Positions 2,379-10,960 of a DNA stretch of 26,097 nucleotides are shown here, piece by piece (the first letter of the stretch is position 1; each line of letters starts with the position of its first letter). The notes below the pieces were generated by a model. That model saw only the letters and a program-made list of their open reading frames with translations, was not told the DNA's origin and made no database searches. The translations under genes were made by a program, and so were the position numbers. Location: sequence record NC_074634.1; one strand, 5' to 3'.

Positions 2379-3686
2379 GTGGCATCCCTAGAAGAATTTA
2401 AAAAACTCTTTGAAGAAAATTCTTTTATATTTAATCCAAGGGATGAAAATCGAATATTGTACTACATATTTAGGAATACCAATATCCCTGAAGAAAAGAA
2501 GGCTAATGCATTAAAGGCATGGAGACTTGGTAATGACAATCAGTACTTTGAAATGTATAAAGCGTTTACTGACGAAATAAAATTCATATCTAAAATCGTA
2601 AAATTTAAAGAGAAAGGCGGTGAAATTGTCGCTTACTTTCAAAATGGCTTTACTGGGCGTTTCGATCCAAGGATGTTGGCAGACAATCCGGATGACGCTT
2701 ACAATTTGATGCAATCCTACTTACTAGTTAAAATCAAAAAATCAACAGACAGTTGGGAAATTTACGACATTATCCCAGTTGAGCCTGCAAAAAATGTAGA
2801 TATTGCCAAGCAATTATTACAATTTGTTGAGGCTGAGCATGTAACATATTCAATTTTACTATATGCTTTTGGCTATGACGTTGAGAAGATGGATGCCAGT
2901 GATGTTTTCTATACAATCCCGAGATTTTTCCCACTTTTTGTTTCTCCATATTCAAAAAGGCGTTATAACGTTATCGAAATTTCAAACCCTGGGACTGGAA
3001 AAACTTCAGTTTTTACAATTTTACAAGAAGTTTTTAATTTTCGATATTATACTGAACCGCCAACTTATGCCAATTTGGTGTATGATGCAAGAAATAATGT
3101 ATTCGGTGCGGTTTATTTGGCAAAAGGGCTAATCTTTGATGAAATTCAAACTTGGAAAAATAGCACAAATCAGAAAAATATGGAAGCTATAAATTCAACA
3201 TTATCGACAGGAATTGAAAATTGCATTTGGACAAGGGGTGCAGGAACAGAAAGTAAATCTGCAGTCCTTCATAGATGCCTTCCAATAATATATGCGGGAA
3301 ATCCATTATTTTTGACATTAGATAGATTTGCATCCCCTGATGTTGAGGATTATTTGCAGAAGTACGAAATTTTTACTCCTGCAATATTGGATAGGATTCA
3401 TATCATCCAAGTTGGAATAAAGAAAACCTATGATCAAATTGGCAGTAGAAGAGTGCTTTATCCTTCGGTTTTAAAAGCTCTTATCGATATTTTGCAAGAA
3501 AAACTAAATCAACAATCCCATTTTGTTGATTGTCAAATTTTCACGTCAAGACGATATGAACAGGCTGTCGACATCCAATTGATGCTAAGGACTCTAGATC
3601 TCCAAAATGATGAAATTGAAAAGAACCAAGATGAATTTTGTGCAAAATTACAGCAATATATGCGATTTATGGGCCTTGGCGGGTGA
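2379..3686 (+). CDS. AAA+ ATPase (SIRV2 gp18/ORF436-like; MCM/BrxL-type ATPase domain)
   Basis: Walker A SNPGTGKTS, Walker B LIFDEIQ, downstream TRG and LDR (arginine-finger-like) motifs. Lies between the SSB and Cas4 genes. GTG start. Confidence 0.88.
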   Translation: MASLEEFKKLFEENSFIFNPRDENRILYYIFRNTNIPEEKKANALKAWRLGNDNQYFEMYKAFTDEIKFISKIVKFKEKGGEIVAYFQNGFTGRFDPRMLADNPDDAYNLMQSYLLVKIKKSTDSWEIYDIIPVEPAKNVDIAKQLLQFVEAEHVTYSILLYAFGYDVEKMDASDVFYTIPRFFPLFVSPYSKRRYNVIEISNPGTGKTSVFTILQEVFNFRYYTEPPTYANLVYDARNNVFGAVYLAKGLIFDEIQTWKNSTNQKNMEAINSTLSTGIENCIWTRGAGTESKSAVLHRCLPIIYAGNPLFLTLDRFASPDVEDYLQKYEIFTPAILDRIHIIQVGIKKTYDQIGSRRVLYPSVLKALIDILQEKLNQQSHFVDCQIFTSRRYEQAVDIQLMLRTLDLQNDEIEKNQDEFCAKLQQYMRFMGLGG

Positions 3687-3691
3687 GAAAA

Positions 3692-4318
3692 ATGGTTTAT
3701 GAAAATAAAATTAAAGAAAGCTTTAAGAAACTTTATCCAGAAAATATCCTTTATCCATCTGAAATTGCGTACTGCTTAAGAAAAACAATTTTGGCAAGAA
3801 GAATTCAACATATAAAAAATATTGGAAGTGAGGTCGCCGATTATGGGCTGGCAATCCATAATGATGTTGAGGCTTATTTTAAGGAGAAACTTGGTTGCGA
3901 AACTGAGAAAGCAATTGAATATGAGATTGAAGGTGTAAAAATTTCAGCAAGAGTAGATTTATTATGCGGAAGTGATCTACTTGAGTTAAAAACGGTTTCA
4001 CATTTTATCCGCCAGCCTTACCAAAATCACATTGTTCAAGTTTCGCTTTATTATCATATATTATCACAACTGAATTATAAAATTGATAATGTCTATCTTG
4101 TTTATATTAATAGACAAAATTATGATGTCCAAGAATTTAAAATTCAAAAAGATCAACTTGACCAGGGATTAAAAAGCGCAATTGAGTTTATAAGGAATTA
4201 CAAAAAATACAAAGATGAACAAAACATATTCAAAATTCCAATTGGGGATACAACATTTTGTAGGAGTTGCGAATTTAGGAATATTTGCTATGGGACAATA
4301 ACAAATTTCCTTAAATGA
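3692..4318 (+). CDS. Cas4-like RecB-family nuclease with predicted 4Fe-4S cluster (SIRV2 gp19-like)
   Basis: YPSEIAYCLRK (Cys1), RVDLL..ELKT (D..ExK), QVSLY and CRSCEFRNIC (three Cys). Start moved to ATG 3692 after GGTGA. Confidence 0.92.
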   Translation: MVYENKIKESFKKLYPENILYPSEIAYCLRKTILARRIQHIKNIGSEVADYGLAIHNDVEAYFKEKLGCETEKAIEYEIEGVKISARVDLLCGSDLLELKTVSHFIRQPYQNHIVQVSLYYHILSQLNYKIDNVYLVYINRQNYDVQEFKIQKDQLDQGLKSAIEFIRNYKKYKDEQNIFKIPIGDTTFCRSCEFRNICYGTITNFLK

Positions 4319-4674
4319 TTGCGCTATGCTTTTAAACCAATTATCGCAAAAAAATACCAGAGGTAGCCAACAGTATCGATAATTTATTTATTATTATTAA
4401 AAAAAATAAATAAAAAGTTATGAAATAAATACTTATGCATATTATATATTTTAAATTTGCATAACATATAGTTTATATTTTATATCTTAAACTATGCATG
4501 CTCATTTTAAGATAATTAGTTTAAGATTTACATTTTAAAATGATGCGATCCCACTTGGTATATATTTTTCTTTTCGTATTACTGTGATAAAATTGGATGC
4601 GTATTAGTGTATGATTCTCTGGATCACTCTAGATATGCTATGCTTTTAATCTGGTCATTATTAAGTATATTATT
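4319..4674. other. Long AT-rich non-coding region containing inverted repeats
   Basis: No ORF of 60 aa or more. TTTATTTATT (4383-4392) pairs with AATAAATAAA (4405-4414), and CATTTTAAAATG (4531-4542) is a perfect palindrome. Confidence 0.55.
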
Positions 4675-5001
4675 ATGAAAGGTAAATTTGACGATTGGAA
4701 TAAATATAGATCTGACGTTAATAAAATAATACTTGAGTATTTTAACAAAGTCGGTATAATGGCGACAACAAGAGCTTTATACTTCTCATTTGCGCAAAAA
4801 ATATTGGCAATTGTTAGAAAACATCAAGATGAAAGCCTTATCAACAAATTAATTGAGGGAAATATCCAATATTTCGTAACAGCGTTTGATGCAAACGAAA
4901 AAGTATTGCGTGATATTGTAAAAATTATAATTTTAGCTAAAATCGTTAAAATGAACCCAGATGATATACTGAAAGAAGTGCTAACGCAAAAATCCAACTA
5001 A
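4675..5001 (+). CDS. Major capsid protein paralogue (SIRV2 fold, N-terminally shortened)
   Basis: Aligns without gaps to the MCP C-terminal bundle: GIMATTRALYFSFAQKI vs GVTGPSRAIYQGYGLKV, and GNIQYFVTAFDANEKVL vs GLKAYYVSAYGANPEIL. Confidence 0.85.
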   Translation: MKGKFDDWNKYRSDVNKIILEYFNKVGIMATTRALYFSFAQKILAIVRKHQDESLINKLIEGNIQYFVTAFDANEKVLRDIVKIIILAKIVKMNPDDILKEVLTQKSN

Positions 5002-5005
5002 CCAT

Positions 5006-5029
5006 ATACAAAATATTATGTATATGGAT
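5006..5029. promoter_or_regulatory. Degenerate ATTCATA-N10-TATGAAT site upstream of the MCP gene (copy G)
   Basis: ATACAAA-ATATTATGTA-TATGGAT, followed by a TATA-like TTTTTATAA at about 5043-5051 and ATG at 5083. Confidence 0.45.
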
Positions 5030-5082
5030 TTTTTGCATTCAATTTTTATAAGCTATTAATTCTAATATTTAATTGACGAAAA

Positions 5083-5487
5083 ATGGCGAAAGGAAGAACA
5101 CCAAGAAGTTTTTCACAAAGGTATGGTAAATGGAACGCCAAATTTACTGCATTTAGCAATCCGACTGTTGCCAGCACAATATTGACTAATGTTGCCCCAA
5201 TTGCGCAAGGAAACTTCCAAACTAACGTACCTAAATTTACATCAGTTAACGAACAAGTTTCGGCGGTATTGACTCAGTACGGAGTTACCGGTCCTTCTAG
5301 AGCAATATACCAAGGCTACGGTTTGAAAGTCGCAAGAGCTTTAAATAGAATCGGCGCTGGTCCCGCCTTAACAAATATGGTTGCTGGTCTCAAAGCTTAT
5401 TACGTCAGTGCATATGGCGCTAACCCAGAAATACTTGACGCTGTGACTAACATAATCCTAGGATCTCCAACTGGATATGTAAGTTAA
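5083..5487 (+). CDS. mcp: Major capsid protein (134 aa, SIRV2 P134 family)
   Basis: MAKGRTPRSFSQRYGKWNAKF...ILGSPTGYVS is nearly collinear with the SIRV2 MCP sequence as recalled. Confidence 0.99.
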   Translation: MAKGRTPRSFSQRYGKWNAKFTAFSNPTVASTILTNVAPIAQGNFQTNVPKFTSVNEQVSAVLTQYGVTGPSRAIYQGYGLKVARALNRIGAGPALTNMVAGLKAYYVSAYGANPEILDAVTNIILGSPTGYVS

Positions 5488-5500
5488 ATTTTAAAGTCAA

Positions 5501-5526
5501 TTTTCTATTTTTTTCCCTTTCTTTTG
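5501..5526 (+). terminator. Oligo-T terminator after mcp
   Basis: Long pyrimidine/T tract beginning 14 nt after the stop codon. Confidence 0.6.
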
Positions 5527-5567
5527 CAATTGTTTTCTTTAAAAATGTAAACTTTTAACGTTTAATC

Positions 5568-5792
5568 ATGTTTGAGGAATATTTAAAGGAAAAAGGTTTT
5601 GAACCCCATCATATTTCAATTCTTAAAGATTTCTTGATTGAAATAAAAGAAGCATTAAGCATAAATGCTAGGAATTATGAATTAGACGAAATTATAAATT
5701 CTATTGTTGAATATTTTGCAATAACGTATGGATTGAAAAAAGAAGATCTTTATCGATTAATAAATGAGGCAATCCAGGACGGTGTTGTCTAA
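5568..5792 (+). CDS. 74-aa acidic protein; probable third, minimal MCP-fold paralogue
   Basis: Gapless 67-residue alignment to the MCP bundle with 12 identities and a conserved hydrophobic pattern (IVEYFAITYGLKKEDL vs LKAYYVSAYGANPEIL). Confidence 0.65.
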   Translation: MFEEYLKEKGFEPHHISILKDFLIEIKEALSINARNYELDEIINSIVEYFAITYGLKKEDLYRLINEAIQDGVV

Positions 5793-6812
5793 ATGGCAAA
5801 AACACTCATTTTGACTATGGGATATTCTTCAATTAAAAATGTCGCTGAAGATATTGCATCAGTCGTCGGTAATGCAGTGATTGATGTCGAACCAACTTTA
5901 TACGTAAATAACGTCAACAAATTCGATAGACTTATTGTATTTGTCCCATTTACTCCGCCTTTACTGAATAACTACTTGTTAGTTTACAATTATTTTCAGG
6001 GTGAGAAGTATTTCTATACGACAGTTGACGGAAAACCAGTTTTACAAGCCACAAATGAGTATATTGCAAGAAATATAAAGTATATACCAAATTCTCAGTT
6101 TTCAGCTGAAAATCTAAAATCTGCTAATCTTGGTGTTGATATTCCAGTTTTCCATGGGGTAAATTTCGACATAGTGAAAAAAGCAGAACAATTAGTTCCA
6201 AAATTGAGACAGAAACTAGATTTAGACTTTCCAGATAGCATAAAAATTGGAATTGTTACGGGGATGACAAAAAGGAAGAATATCGATTTGTTTGTCGAAA
6301 CAACTCGTTACTTAAATGAAAAAATGCCAGATGTTGCTAAAAATGTTCACTTCTTTGTAATTTCTCATGCAGATTTCCAAAAACTTGAAGTTCCGCAAAA
6401 CGTTCACTTTGTTGCACAGTTTGGTTACCAAAGCAGAGAAAAAGTATTTGCATTTTACGGTTCTATGGATTATGTATTTGTCCCATCTGGATGTGAAGGT
6501 TTTGGTCTCCCAGTCCTTGAGGCAATGGCTATGGGCACGCCGGTTATACACATGGCTATTCCACCGTTCACTGAATTTACATCATGGCAGTGGAACTTTT
6601 TGTTTAAAGATGACGACGTCATAGAATATTACGATAAAGACCGTGGTCAAATATGGAAAATTCATAGATTTAAACCAGAAACTGGGGCATTAGCGATAGC
6701 GACTGCTGTCATGGCAAGTGATAGAGAAGAAAGAAGTCGTCATCTTAAAGATTTAGCTAAAAAATATGATATTAAGTTTTTGTATAAAAGATTTTTAGAG
6801 GGTTTCGAATAA
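5793..6812 (+). CDS. Glycosyltransferase, GT-B fold (GT4-like; SIRV ORF335-like)
   Basis: FVPSGCEGFGLPVLEAMAMGTPVI signature and KRKN nucleotide-sugar-binding motif. Confidence 0.93.
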   Translation: MAKTLILTMGYSSIKNVAEDIASVVGNAVIDVEPTLYVNNVNKFDRLIVFVPFTPPLLNNYLLVYNYFQGEKYFYTTVDGKPVLQATNEYIARNIKYIPNSQFSAENLKSANLGVDIPVFHGVNFDIVKKAEQLVPKLRQKLDLDFPDSIKIGIVTGMTKRKNIDLFVETTRYLNEKMPDVAKNVHFFVISHADFQKLEVPQNVHFVAQFGYQSREKVFAFYGSMDYVFVPSGCEGFGLPVLEAMAMGTPVIHMAIPPFTEFTSWQWNFLFKDDDVIEYYDKDRGQIWKIHRFKPETGALAIATAVMASDREERSRHLKDLAKKYDIKFLYKRFLEGFE

Positions 6813-9469: not shown

Positions 9470-10885
9470 TTATCTGTTTGCTATGTTTTTAAAACCTTTA
9501 TTGTAAAATATAGGTTTATAATTTTGCAAGTACACTTTTTTCTGATCTAATTTTCTTTGTGTTTGTATCCTGCCGAGACCTTGTAGTTGTTCCCCGATTT
9601 GTTGTGCAAACTGAAGATCTGCGTCAGAAAGACCGTATAATTTCCATTTTTGTTTCCAATATTGCAAAAATTGATCATACGGTAGTGTCCTGGGACCAGC
9701 GGTATACGATAAGTTACCCTGGTATGTATATCTTGCGACTTGCAGTATTGCAGATGCCACCATTTTTGCATACCAGATGTTGTTATATTTCTTATTTACA
9801 ATTTTTTGTATTCTTTCGTATAATTCATAATTTGAAATATATGTTTCTGCATATTGAGAATTTGAAATATTTGTCGCGCCAGGTCCTAATTCTTGTAAAT
9901 GTTGTCCAAATATTTGACCGAAAACTGAAATTATTGCCCTCTCTGTCGATAAAATTGCAGATAATTGAATGTCGTTTAAGTTCTGATCTGTAGGAAAGTC
10001 TGGCATCAAAACGTTAAAGTCTAGAGGCGTAAGATCTAGGATTATACCAAGTGCATGTGAAAAGTTTTGAATTTTTATGTTGTCGGCAAGAAGTTGATAG
10101 TCATTTTCTCTTTCTGAAAAAGCGGACCGGTCAAACCAAGAGACGTCAAGTGCAACTCCGCTATCAATTATATTGTTTATCAGCGACAAAAATGCTAACA
10201 AATATTTTGCTAAGTCTGGTAAAGAATTGAAATATTGTTGTGGAGTTGTGTTTTTCTGTTGAGCCAATTTTGATAGTGCGTCAGCCACTCCAGTTTTTTC
10301 AACAAGTGAGTAGAGATAATTGTCAACCGCAGGAATTTGTGTTTTTCCAACTCCAAGATTTTCAAATGTTGTAACAGTTACTGTTGTCGGCGGATTAGCA
10401 AAATACGATTCTAATTTTTTACATGCCTGATTATTGAAAATTACTCCAGGGGCAGGGGCGTAAACTGAGGCATCAAAACTTGTTTCATCAAATATTGCAA
10501 TTTGGTACAGTACTGAACAATTTTCGACATATTGATCATAAAGTGAAGTAAAACTGTTGAGGGCGTCAAGTGCTGAAGTTGACGATAATGTCGCTAAATT
10601 GAAAATATTTGATTGCGCAGTGTTTGGTATGAAATTATTCAACACTGATGCTGAAAAATTGTTTATTGCATTTAGGAAATTAATTATGATTTGTGCGAAA
10701 GCAATTCCGTAATTGACATTCATATACGCTGGGACTACAACATTTTCAAGTGAAGTCGGTAAAGTGCTTTCAATTCCTGCTGACAACATTGCCTTGAAGG
10801 CAGGGTAAACATTTTGATTAAATATCTTATTGTAGAGATGATATTTCATTTGTGCAACTGATCTTGAACCTTTTTTCTTTGGCAT
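9470..10885 (-). CDS. Minor virion protein (SIRV2 ORF488-like)
   Basis: Size, N/Q/S-rich composition and position beside hjc. Start set at MPKKKGSRS (10885); 10918 is the alternative. Confidence 0.7.
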   Translation of the reverse strand: MPKKKGSRSVAQMKYHLYNKIFNQNVYPAFKAMLSAGIESTLPTSLENVVVPAYMNVNYGIAFAQIIINFLNAINNFSASVLNNFIPNTAQSNIFNLATLSSTSALDALNSFTSLYDQYVENCSVLYQIAIFDETSFDASVYAPAPGVIFNNQACKKLESYFANPPTTVTVTTFENLGVGKTQIPAVDNYLYSLVEKTGVADALSKLAQQKNTTPQQYFNSLPDLAKYLLAFLSLINNIIDSGVALDVSWFDRSAFSERENDYQLLADNIKIQNFSHALGIILDLTPLDFNVLMPDFPTDQNLNDIQLSAILSTERAIISVFGQIFGQHLQELGPGATNISNSQYAETYISNYELYERIQKIVNKKYNNIWYAKMVASAILQVARYTYQGNLSYTAGPRTLPYDQFLQYWKQKWKLYGLSDADLQFAQQIGEQLQGLGRIQTQRKLDQKKVYLQNYKPIFYNKGFKNIANR

Positions 10886-10926
10886 TTCACATCTGTTTAT
10901 TTTTTCTTTTCTTTTCATTTTTATTG

Positions 10927-10960
10927 CTCAATATCCAACAGTCATATTCATAATATTAAT
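10927..10960 (+). repeat. 34-bp inverted repeat, left arm (overlaps palindrome copy B, 10946-10969)
   Basis: CTCAATATCCAACAGTCATATTCATAATATTAAT matches the reverse complement of 13190-13223 at 33/34 nt. Confidence 0.9.

Follow-up and report, generated by a model that had tools for sequence, protein, structure and literature searches.

Three paralogous capsid-fold genes in the archaeal rod-shaped virus SSRV1, with ORF74 as a probable armless and acidic third copy

Positions 4675-5792 of the genome of SSRV1, an archaeal rod-shaped virus (record NC_074634.1; the window analysed here is the whole stretch of 26,097 nucleotides), raise the question of how many genes of the capsid fold a rudivirus holds. 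According to the 2025 profile of the virus taxonomy committee ICTV, "rudivirids encode a single MCP" (major capsid protein; PMC12282232), and the SSRV1 virion is built of a homodimer of the MCP gp11 (PMC12282232). An earlier note, made from the letters of this DNA, had read three tandem capsid-fold genes in the segment, and the coordinates and open reading frames (ORFs) that it gave for all three are exact. As judged here, the single-MCP statement holds for virion composition and not for gene content. SSRV1 4675-5792 would carry three paralogous genes for the SIRV2-type capsid four-helix bundle, and the last of them, gp12 or ORF74, is very probably a third MCP paralogue that consists of the bundle only and is specific to Hoswirudivirus. 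The three genes are the following.

4675..5001, + strand: gp10 / ORF108 (ORF10-108), arm-shortened basic MCP paralogue; GenBank label "putative coat protein"
5083..5487, + strand: gp11 / ORF134 (ORF11-134), major capsid protein; GenBank label "putative major capsid protein"
5568..5792, + strand: gp12 / ORF74 (ORF12-74), acidic, bundle-only, putative third MCP paralogue; GenBank label "hypothetical protein"

The middle gene is the reference for the other two. gp11 is the protein of the cryo-electron microscopy (cryo-EM) structure PDB 6WQ0 (identical to 6wq0_A, E=6e-85), matches the Pfam family PF12193 (Sulf_coat_C, Sulfolobus virus coat protein) at E=5e-75, and has a ratio of nonsynonymous to synonymous substitution rates (dN/dS) of about 0.07. 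In the rudiviral MCP (SIRV2 P134 / SSRV1 gp11; PF12193; PDB 3J9X, 6WQ0, 3F2E), an arm some 50 residues long, by which A-form DNA is wrapped, is joined to a bundle with five basic residues.

Judged from its sequence, ORF108 is a bona fide arm-shortened paralogue of this protein. It scores 106 bits against PF12193 (E=2.2e-30), well over the gathering cut-off of 25.2, and thus is a member of the family, and a single ungapped BLASTP alignment of 74 residues joins it to MCP residues 53-126 (22% identity, E=2e-9). The AlphaFold2 (AF2) model of ORF108, with a mean predicted local distance difference test (pLDDT) score of 88.7, has helices at residues 8-26, 30-49, 53-71, 75-89 and 95-104, and its predicted C-terminal four-helix bundle is superposable on the solved MCPs of Adnaviria. 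Its first residue corresponds to MCP residue 41, so that the DNA-wrapping arm is short by about 40 residues, and it keeps three of the five basic bundle residues, namely the equivalents of R73, K82 and R89. R and K occupy the R73 and K82 positions in 4/4 ORF108 homologues, the close ones being those of ARV2, MRV1 and ARV3, and ORF108 itself is basic, with a net positive charge and an isoelectric point (pI) of 9.45, compared with 10.1 for the MCP. The N-terminus of ORF108 (MKGK..DWNKY) resembles the tip of the MCP (MAKGR..KWNAKF) at chance level (230/1000 shuffles), and therefore no claim of an internal over a terminal deletion is made.

A further protein of this type is encoded by ARV1, where ORF124 (AJ875026 6315-6689, annotated as "hypothetical") matches the ORF108-family hidden Markov model (HMM) at E=1.4e-9. 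Its score against PF12193 is below threshold (17.6 bits, cut-off 25.2), and its gene stands directly after that of a Cas4-like nuclease, the same placement as that of ORF108. These features suggest that ARV1 ORF124 belongs to the ORF108-type arm-shortened MCP paralogues, which is a new point. It differs from ORF108 in its length of 124 amino acids and its longer C-terminal tail, and ARV1 is without an equivalent of ORF74. Several ORFs with similar names, namely ORF109 and ORF59 of SRV, ORF55 and ORF76 of SIRV2, and ORF74a/ORF74b and ORF108 of ARV1, are unrelated to SSRV1 ORF74 or ORF108, the names being shared because they merely give the length in residues.

The sequence link between ORF74 and the MCP appears as a single register. 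When the ORF74 family, with its four members, was used as the query in hhalign, every alignment was ungapped, extended over 59-67 columns and placed ORF74 residue i on MCP residue i+57. The match to 17 MCPs has P=0.012 (2/200 column shuffles reaching the score) and that to the four ORF108 homologues P=0.011 (3/200), while the MCPs and ORF108 merged give P=7e-4 (0/300). With ARV1 ORF124 added to the merged set, P is 1.2e-4 at an HHalign probability of 55% (0/200), and the five arm-shortened paralogues alone give P=1.7e-4. A reversed-sequence control, in which helical periodicity is kept, scores 11.8 against the observed 28.4. The pairwise offsets of the three proteins are transitively consistent (17 + 40 = 57), such that ORF74 i = ORF108 i+17 = MCP i+57, and the best ungapped diagonal, between ORF74 17-66 and MCP 74-123, has a raw BLOSUM62 score of 37, above that of 300/300 shuffles (mean 22.1, standard deviation 3.5; z about 4).

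Profile searches of a pool of 546 ORFs, covering SSRV1 and ARV1 and, in part, SRV and SIRV2, lead to the same proteins. The MCP-family HMM places ORF74 next below the true members of the family (E=0.02), and the first non-self match of the ORF74 HMM is ARV1 ORF124 (E=0.026), to which hhalign aligns ORF74 with 24% identity (P=0.013) and the common motifs GF.P and IN..I.Y...Y...K..L. In addition, the residues common to the MCP, ORF108 and ORF74 families sit on MCP-invariant columns: G67, Y106, the aromatic residue at 107, and L118. Another SSRV1 protein, the ORF488-like minor virion protein encoded at 9473-10927 (- strand), reaches only E=1.8 against the merged MCP-family HMM, and a likeness of its ends to the MCP thus gains no support from this simple search.

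The predicted fold of ORF74 is in keeping with this register. Its AF2 model, made from the four-sequence alignment (pLDDT 73.5), contains four helices at residues 2-8, 13-32, 36-54 and 58-72, the last three of which, when shifted by 17, match ORF108 helices 30-49, 53-71 and 75-89 to the residue. This predicted four-helix bundle is superposable on the solved Adnaviria MCPs. In an exhaustive comparison of the model with 48,161 PDB chains, ranks 1-3 are lipothrixvirus MCPs, and the seven MCP chains at the top of the ORF108 ranking are all found among the first 41, ranks 1-3 included.

What ORF74 lacks is equally consistent across its homologues. Its first residue corresponds to MCP residue 58, which leaves it without an N-terminal arm such as the functional MCP carries, and no N-terminal extension is hidden upstream, as the stop-to-stop frame opens just three codons before the ATG. 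R73 and K82, which are invariant in 17 MCPs, are replaced by I and E in 4/4 ORF74 homologues. At R73, K82, R85, R89 and K104 (SSRV1 MCP numbering), the four viruses have I, E, E, I/T/E and V/I, leaving none of the five positions basic, and the protein is acidic throughout the family (pI 4.65 and net charge -7 in SSRV1; pI 4.25-4.65 and net -7 to -9 among the four homologues). It is thus shown or strongly indicated that ORF74 has the fold and register of the MCP bundle, is armless, and has every basic bundle residue turned neutral or acidic. Because the MCP arm wraps DNA (PMC7189273) and ORF74 has no arm, ORF74 would be unable to coat DNA as the MCP does.

Most of what the earlier note had read at this locus is borne out by these results. 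Both ungapped alignments to the MCP bundle are recovered, that of ORF108 by BLASTP and PF12193 and that of ORF74 by hhalign and the diagonal. ORF108 does keep basic residues without most of the arm, and the armless, acidic character of ORF74, with its changes of R to I and K to E, is true of all four homologues and extends to R85, R89 and K104. The note had named a predicted ORF74 structure other than the SIRV2 four-helix bundle as an outcome that would overturn its reading; the best PDB matches are ligamenviral MCPs, and this comparison did not refute the reading. Of its claim of three capsid-fold paralogues, the structural and evolutionary part stands; ORF108 is already annotated as a coat protein in GenBank and Pfam and is therefore not new. 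The roles that the note proposed for ORF74, as chain terminator, end cap, assembly chaperone or decoy, are purely conjectural. The view of ORF74 as an overlooked third paralogue is very probable, and no annotation of it as such was found.

Homologues of ORF74 are present only in four Hoswirudivirus genomes, those of SSRV1, ARV2, MRV1 and ARV3. All four are exactly 74 residues long, without indels and with 77-84% identity, and their pairwise dN/dS is 0.07-0.20 at dS 0.4-1.4, by which a real gene under purifying selection is shown or strongly indicated. No relative of ORF74 lies between the MCP and glycosyltransferase genes of ARV1, SRV and SIRV2, and scans of IMG/VR and metagenome contigs gave no further ORF74. 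The neighbourhood of the metagenomic MCP P0010 is SIRV-like and without ORF74, and a search among sequencing runs brought up none of RNA, the shares in hot-spring metagenomes being only small. ORF74 spans the equivalent of MCP residues 58-131 (of 134), ends at the equivalent C-terminal position and adjoins the MCP gene directly on its 3' side. For these reasons, ORF74 would most simply stem from a tandem duplication that took in only the 3' part of the MCP gene.

Several results weigh against placing ORF74 among the capsid proteins. BLASTP of ORF74 against the MCP and ORF108 gives no match at E<=100, PF12193 gives none even at E<=10, so that ORF74 falls outside the Pfam family, and the ORF74-family HMM found no MCP among PDB sequences. 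A word and profile search of 1.84 billion representatives returned only the four known ORF74 homologues, in one cluster, with no link to an MCP. Candidates from Pfam and PHROG are noise (MoCF_biosynth at E=0.0077, below the cut-off, and RHH_6 at E=0.22), and the hhalign probability reaches only the 55% given above. On the structural side, Foldseek searches of the model against PDB and BFVD gave no significant match (all E>1), the weak rows including AFV1 ORF132 and the C-terminal domain of the SIRV coat protein in PDB, and SSRV1 ORF108 (rank 4) and ARV1 ORF124 (rank 11) in BFVD. Unrelated helical domains reach Z scores similar to those of the MCPs, and the AF2 model is of moderate confidence, built from just four close sequences by a method whose training included MCP structures. 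No single line of the evidence for ORF74 is strong. In the ESM Atlas, searched by features and by shape, no usable match to ORF74 was found.

Taken together, the empty standard searches and the similar Z scores of unrelated domains are what would be expected if ORF74 were a small acidic helical protein unrelated to the MCP, such as an anti-defence protein or a regulator, that resembles it through composition and a common up-down helical bundle. Small acidic ORFans are typical of viral anti-defence genes. This explanation is nonetheless unlikely, as it leaves to coincidence that the predicted helix boundaries and three independent family profiles agree in register, that all seven ORF108-top MCP chains come so near the head of the ORF74 list, and that the shuffle and reversed controls stay below the ORF74 score. 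The gene would also have to lie directly downstream of the MCP gene and end at the equivalent C-terminal position by chance.

The expression of ORF74 bears on its possible function, and involves the following features of the surrounding DNA.

5002..5037, + strand: hairpin and T-run, terminator-like, with a 9-pair stem at 5002-5027 and then ATTTTTTG; putative terminator of ORF108
5508..5514, + strand: T7 run 3' of the MCP stop codon, unchanged among the four viruses; putative signal of the archaeal terminator type
5538..5550, + strand: TATA-like box TTTAAAAATGTAA, identical in SSRV1, ARV2, MRV1 and ARV3; putative promoter element
5778..5788, + strand: GACGGTGTTGT, nucleotide-invariant including synonymous sites, with GGTG inside; putative role in coupling
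5793..6812, + strand: gp13 glycosyltransferase, its ATG right after the ORF74 stop in 4/4 viruses

ORF108, the MCP and ORF74 look like separate transcription units, because ORF108 ends in the hairpin and T-run, which is the sole terminator-like match within 4300-5900, the MCP gene is followed by the T7 run, and ORF74 is preceded by its own box. The centre of TTTAAAAATGTAA lies about 26 nucleotides before the ORF74 ATG, and the box is conserved despite a 24-nucleotide upstream insertion in ARV3. As this spacing is typical of a Sulfolobales TATA box, ORF74 probably has its own promoter and a leaderless mRNA. At the other end of the gene, the last 11 nucleotides are invariant in 4/4 viruses, including three synonymous positions and the Shine-Dalgarno-like GGTG motif, which is 9 nucleotides before the glycosyltransferase ATG. 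Together with the abutting stop and start codons, this suggests from the DNA alone that ORF74 and the glycosyltransferase are co-transcribed and translationally coupled. The tight coupling, which allows a rival function, and the recognition of ARV1 ORF124 as an ORF108-type paralogue are the two points absent from the earlier note.

The adjacency of the MCP and glycosyltransferase genes is kept across the rudiviruses SIRV2, SRV and ARV1. In SIRV2, the spacer between the two holds ORF55 (3010-3174, - strand), a C2H2 zinc-finger protein unrelated to ORF74, and because of this the spacer is a hotspot for lineage-specific small genes.

For the three genes together, the following course can be proposed. 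gp11 is the DNA-wrapping MCP. gp10 would be an older paralogue with the bundle, three of its five basic residues and an arm short by about 40 residues, and with ORF124 as its counterpart in ARV1. gp12 would have arisen when the 3' part of the MCP gene was duplicated in tandem and inserted behind the MCP terminator, ahead of the glycosyltransferase gene. Presumably co-expressed with the glycosyltransferase under a promoter of its own, ORF74 may act by protein-protein contacts of its retained bundle surface with the MCP or ORF108, either keeping the MCP in solution and away from DNA until assembly or taking lattice positions where growth must stop. The role of a non-coating modulator of nucleocapsid assembly is proposed tentatively, and a complex prediction for MCP and ORF74 (score 0.00) gave no answer and weighs neither for nor against binding. 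The whole statement, comprising the three paralogous bundle genes and this mechanism of ORF74, is rather probable when weighted toward the part that is shown.

Two other functions were considered in which ORF74 is still an MCP-bundle paralogue. The coupling to gp13 suits a role outside assembly equally well, and thus also counts against the proposed modulator. As a coat-protein mimic, ORF74 could recruit, regulate or chaperone the glycosyltransferase, by which virion or host proteins are modified, and have no place in the lattice. The abutting stop and start codons with their invariant 11 nucleotides, the one conserved promoter-like box that serves both genes, and the conserved adjacency in SIRV2, SRV and ARV1 all speak for such a role. 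However, these same three viruses have the glycosyltransferase beside the MCP without ORF74, and therefore the enzyme does not need it, and the coupling may simply mark where the duplication landed. This function is considered improbable.

A comparably low probability is given to the view that ORF74, ORF108 or both are minor virion proteins, acting as end caps at both ends where the MCP lattice stops or sitting at lattice defects. Both proteins keep the predicted lattice-forming bundle, and ORF108 also has a positive net charge and has held on to the counterparts of R73, K82 and R89. Rare terminal subunits would not show up in 6WQ0, a cryo-EM structure obtained by helical averaging. An acidic ORF74 without any basic bundle residue is, on the other hand, unlikely to sit on DNA, and other rudiviruses close their ends without it.

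A related case is that of lipothrixviruses and tristromaviruses with their MCP1/MCP2 pairs (AFV1 ORF132/ORF140, SIFV, SFV1, PFV2). There, as in SSRV1, capsid genes of the same fold are duplicated side by side, and it is these MCPs that the ORF74 model matches best in structure. In those viruses, MCP1 and MCP2 are both armed and wrap DNA together as a heterodimer (PMC7189273, PMC5517147), unlike the extra capsid copies of SSRV1, which are without a full arm. For the proposed mechanism, an analogy is offered by Ccm of SaPIbov5 (PMC8569155), a truncated or diverged copy of a capsid protein by which the genuine protein is influenced in its assembly. Ccm differs in having the HK97 fold, in belonging to a satellite that acts against its helper phage and in its demonstrated function, and there is no homology between the two. 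A wider and more doubtful extension is that ORF74 is an acidic, armless, virus-encoded mimic of the virus's own capsid protein that governs nucleocapsid polymerisation as a chaperone or filament-end cap, forming with ORF108/ORF124 a small family of specialised capsid paralogues in viruses that textbooks describe as having a single MCP.

Literature searches turned up no publication on gp10 or gp12 and, judged by annotation and by the literature that could be searched, ORF74 as an armless, charge-inverted third bundle copy is new. A probable origin can thereby be assigned to the ORFan family of ORF74 and to ARV1 ORF124. Rudiviruses are the reference system for the encapsidation of A-form DNA, and three tandem capsid-fold genes in one genus, within the scope of four genomes, provide a testable handle on what starts and limits filament assembly and keeps it off host DNA. 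ORF74 and ORF108 also bear on the origin of the paralogous MCP pairs in other Adnaviria. If the proposal is true, the rudiviral capsid paralogues would be living intermediates of a duplication-divergence route to the heterodimeric capsids of lipothrixviruses and tristromaviruses.

A separate observation concerns the DNA upstream of ORF108. A perfect 13-nucleotide direct repeat, GCTATGCTTTTAA, occurs at 4323-4335 and 4637-4649 with a spacing of 314 nucleotides, its copies flanking an AT-rich non-coding gap between the Cas4 gene gp09 and ORF108 that holds several AT-rich inverted repeats. The corresponding gap in ARV2, MRV1 and ARV3 is only about 68-92 base pairs, nucleotide homology beginning near 4603, and the gap of SSRV1 has the look of an insertion or a duplication peculiar to this virus, its repeats being target-site-like.
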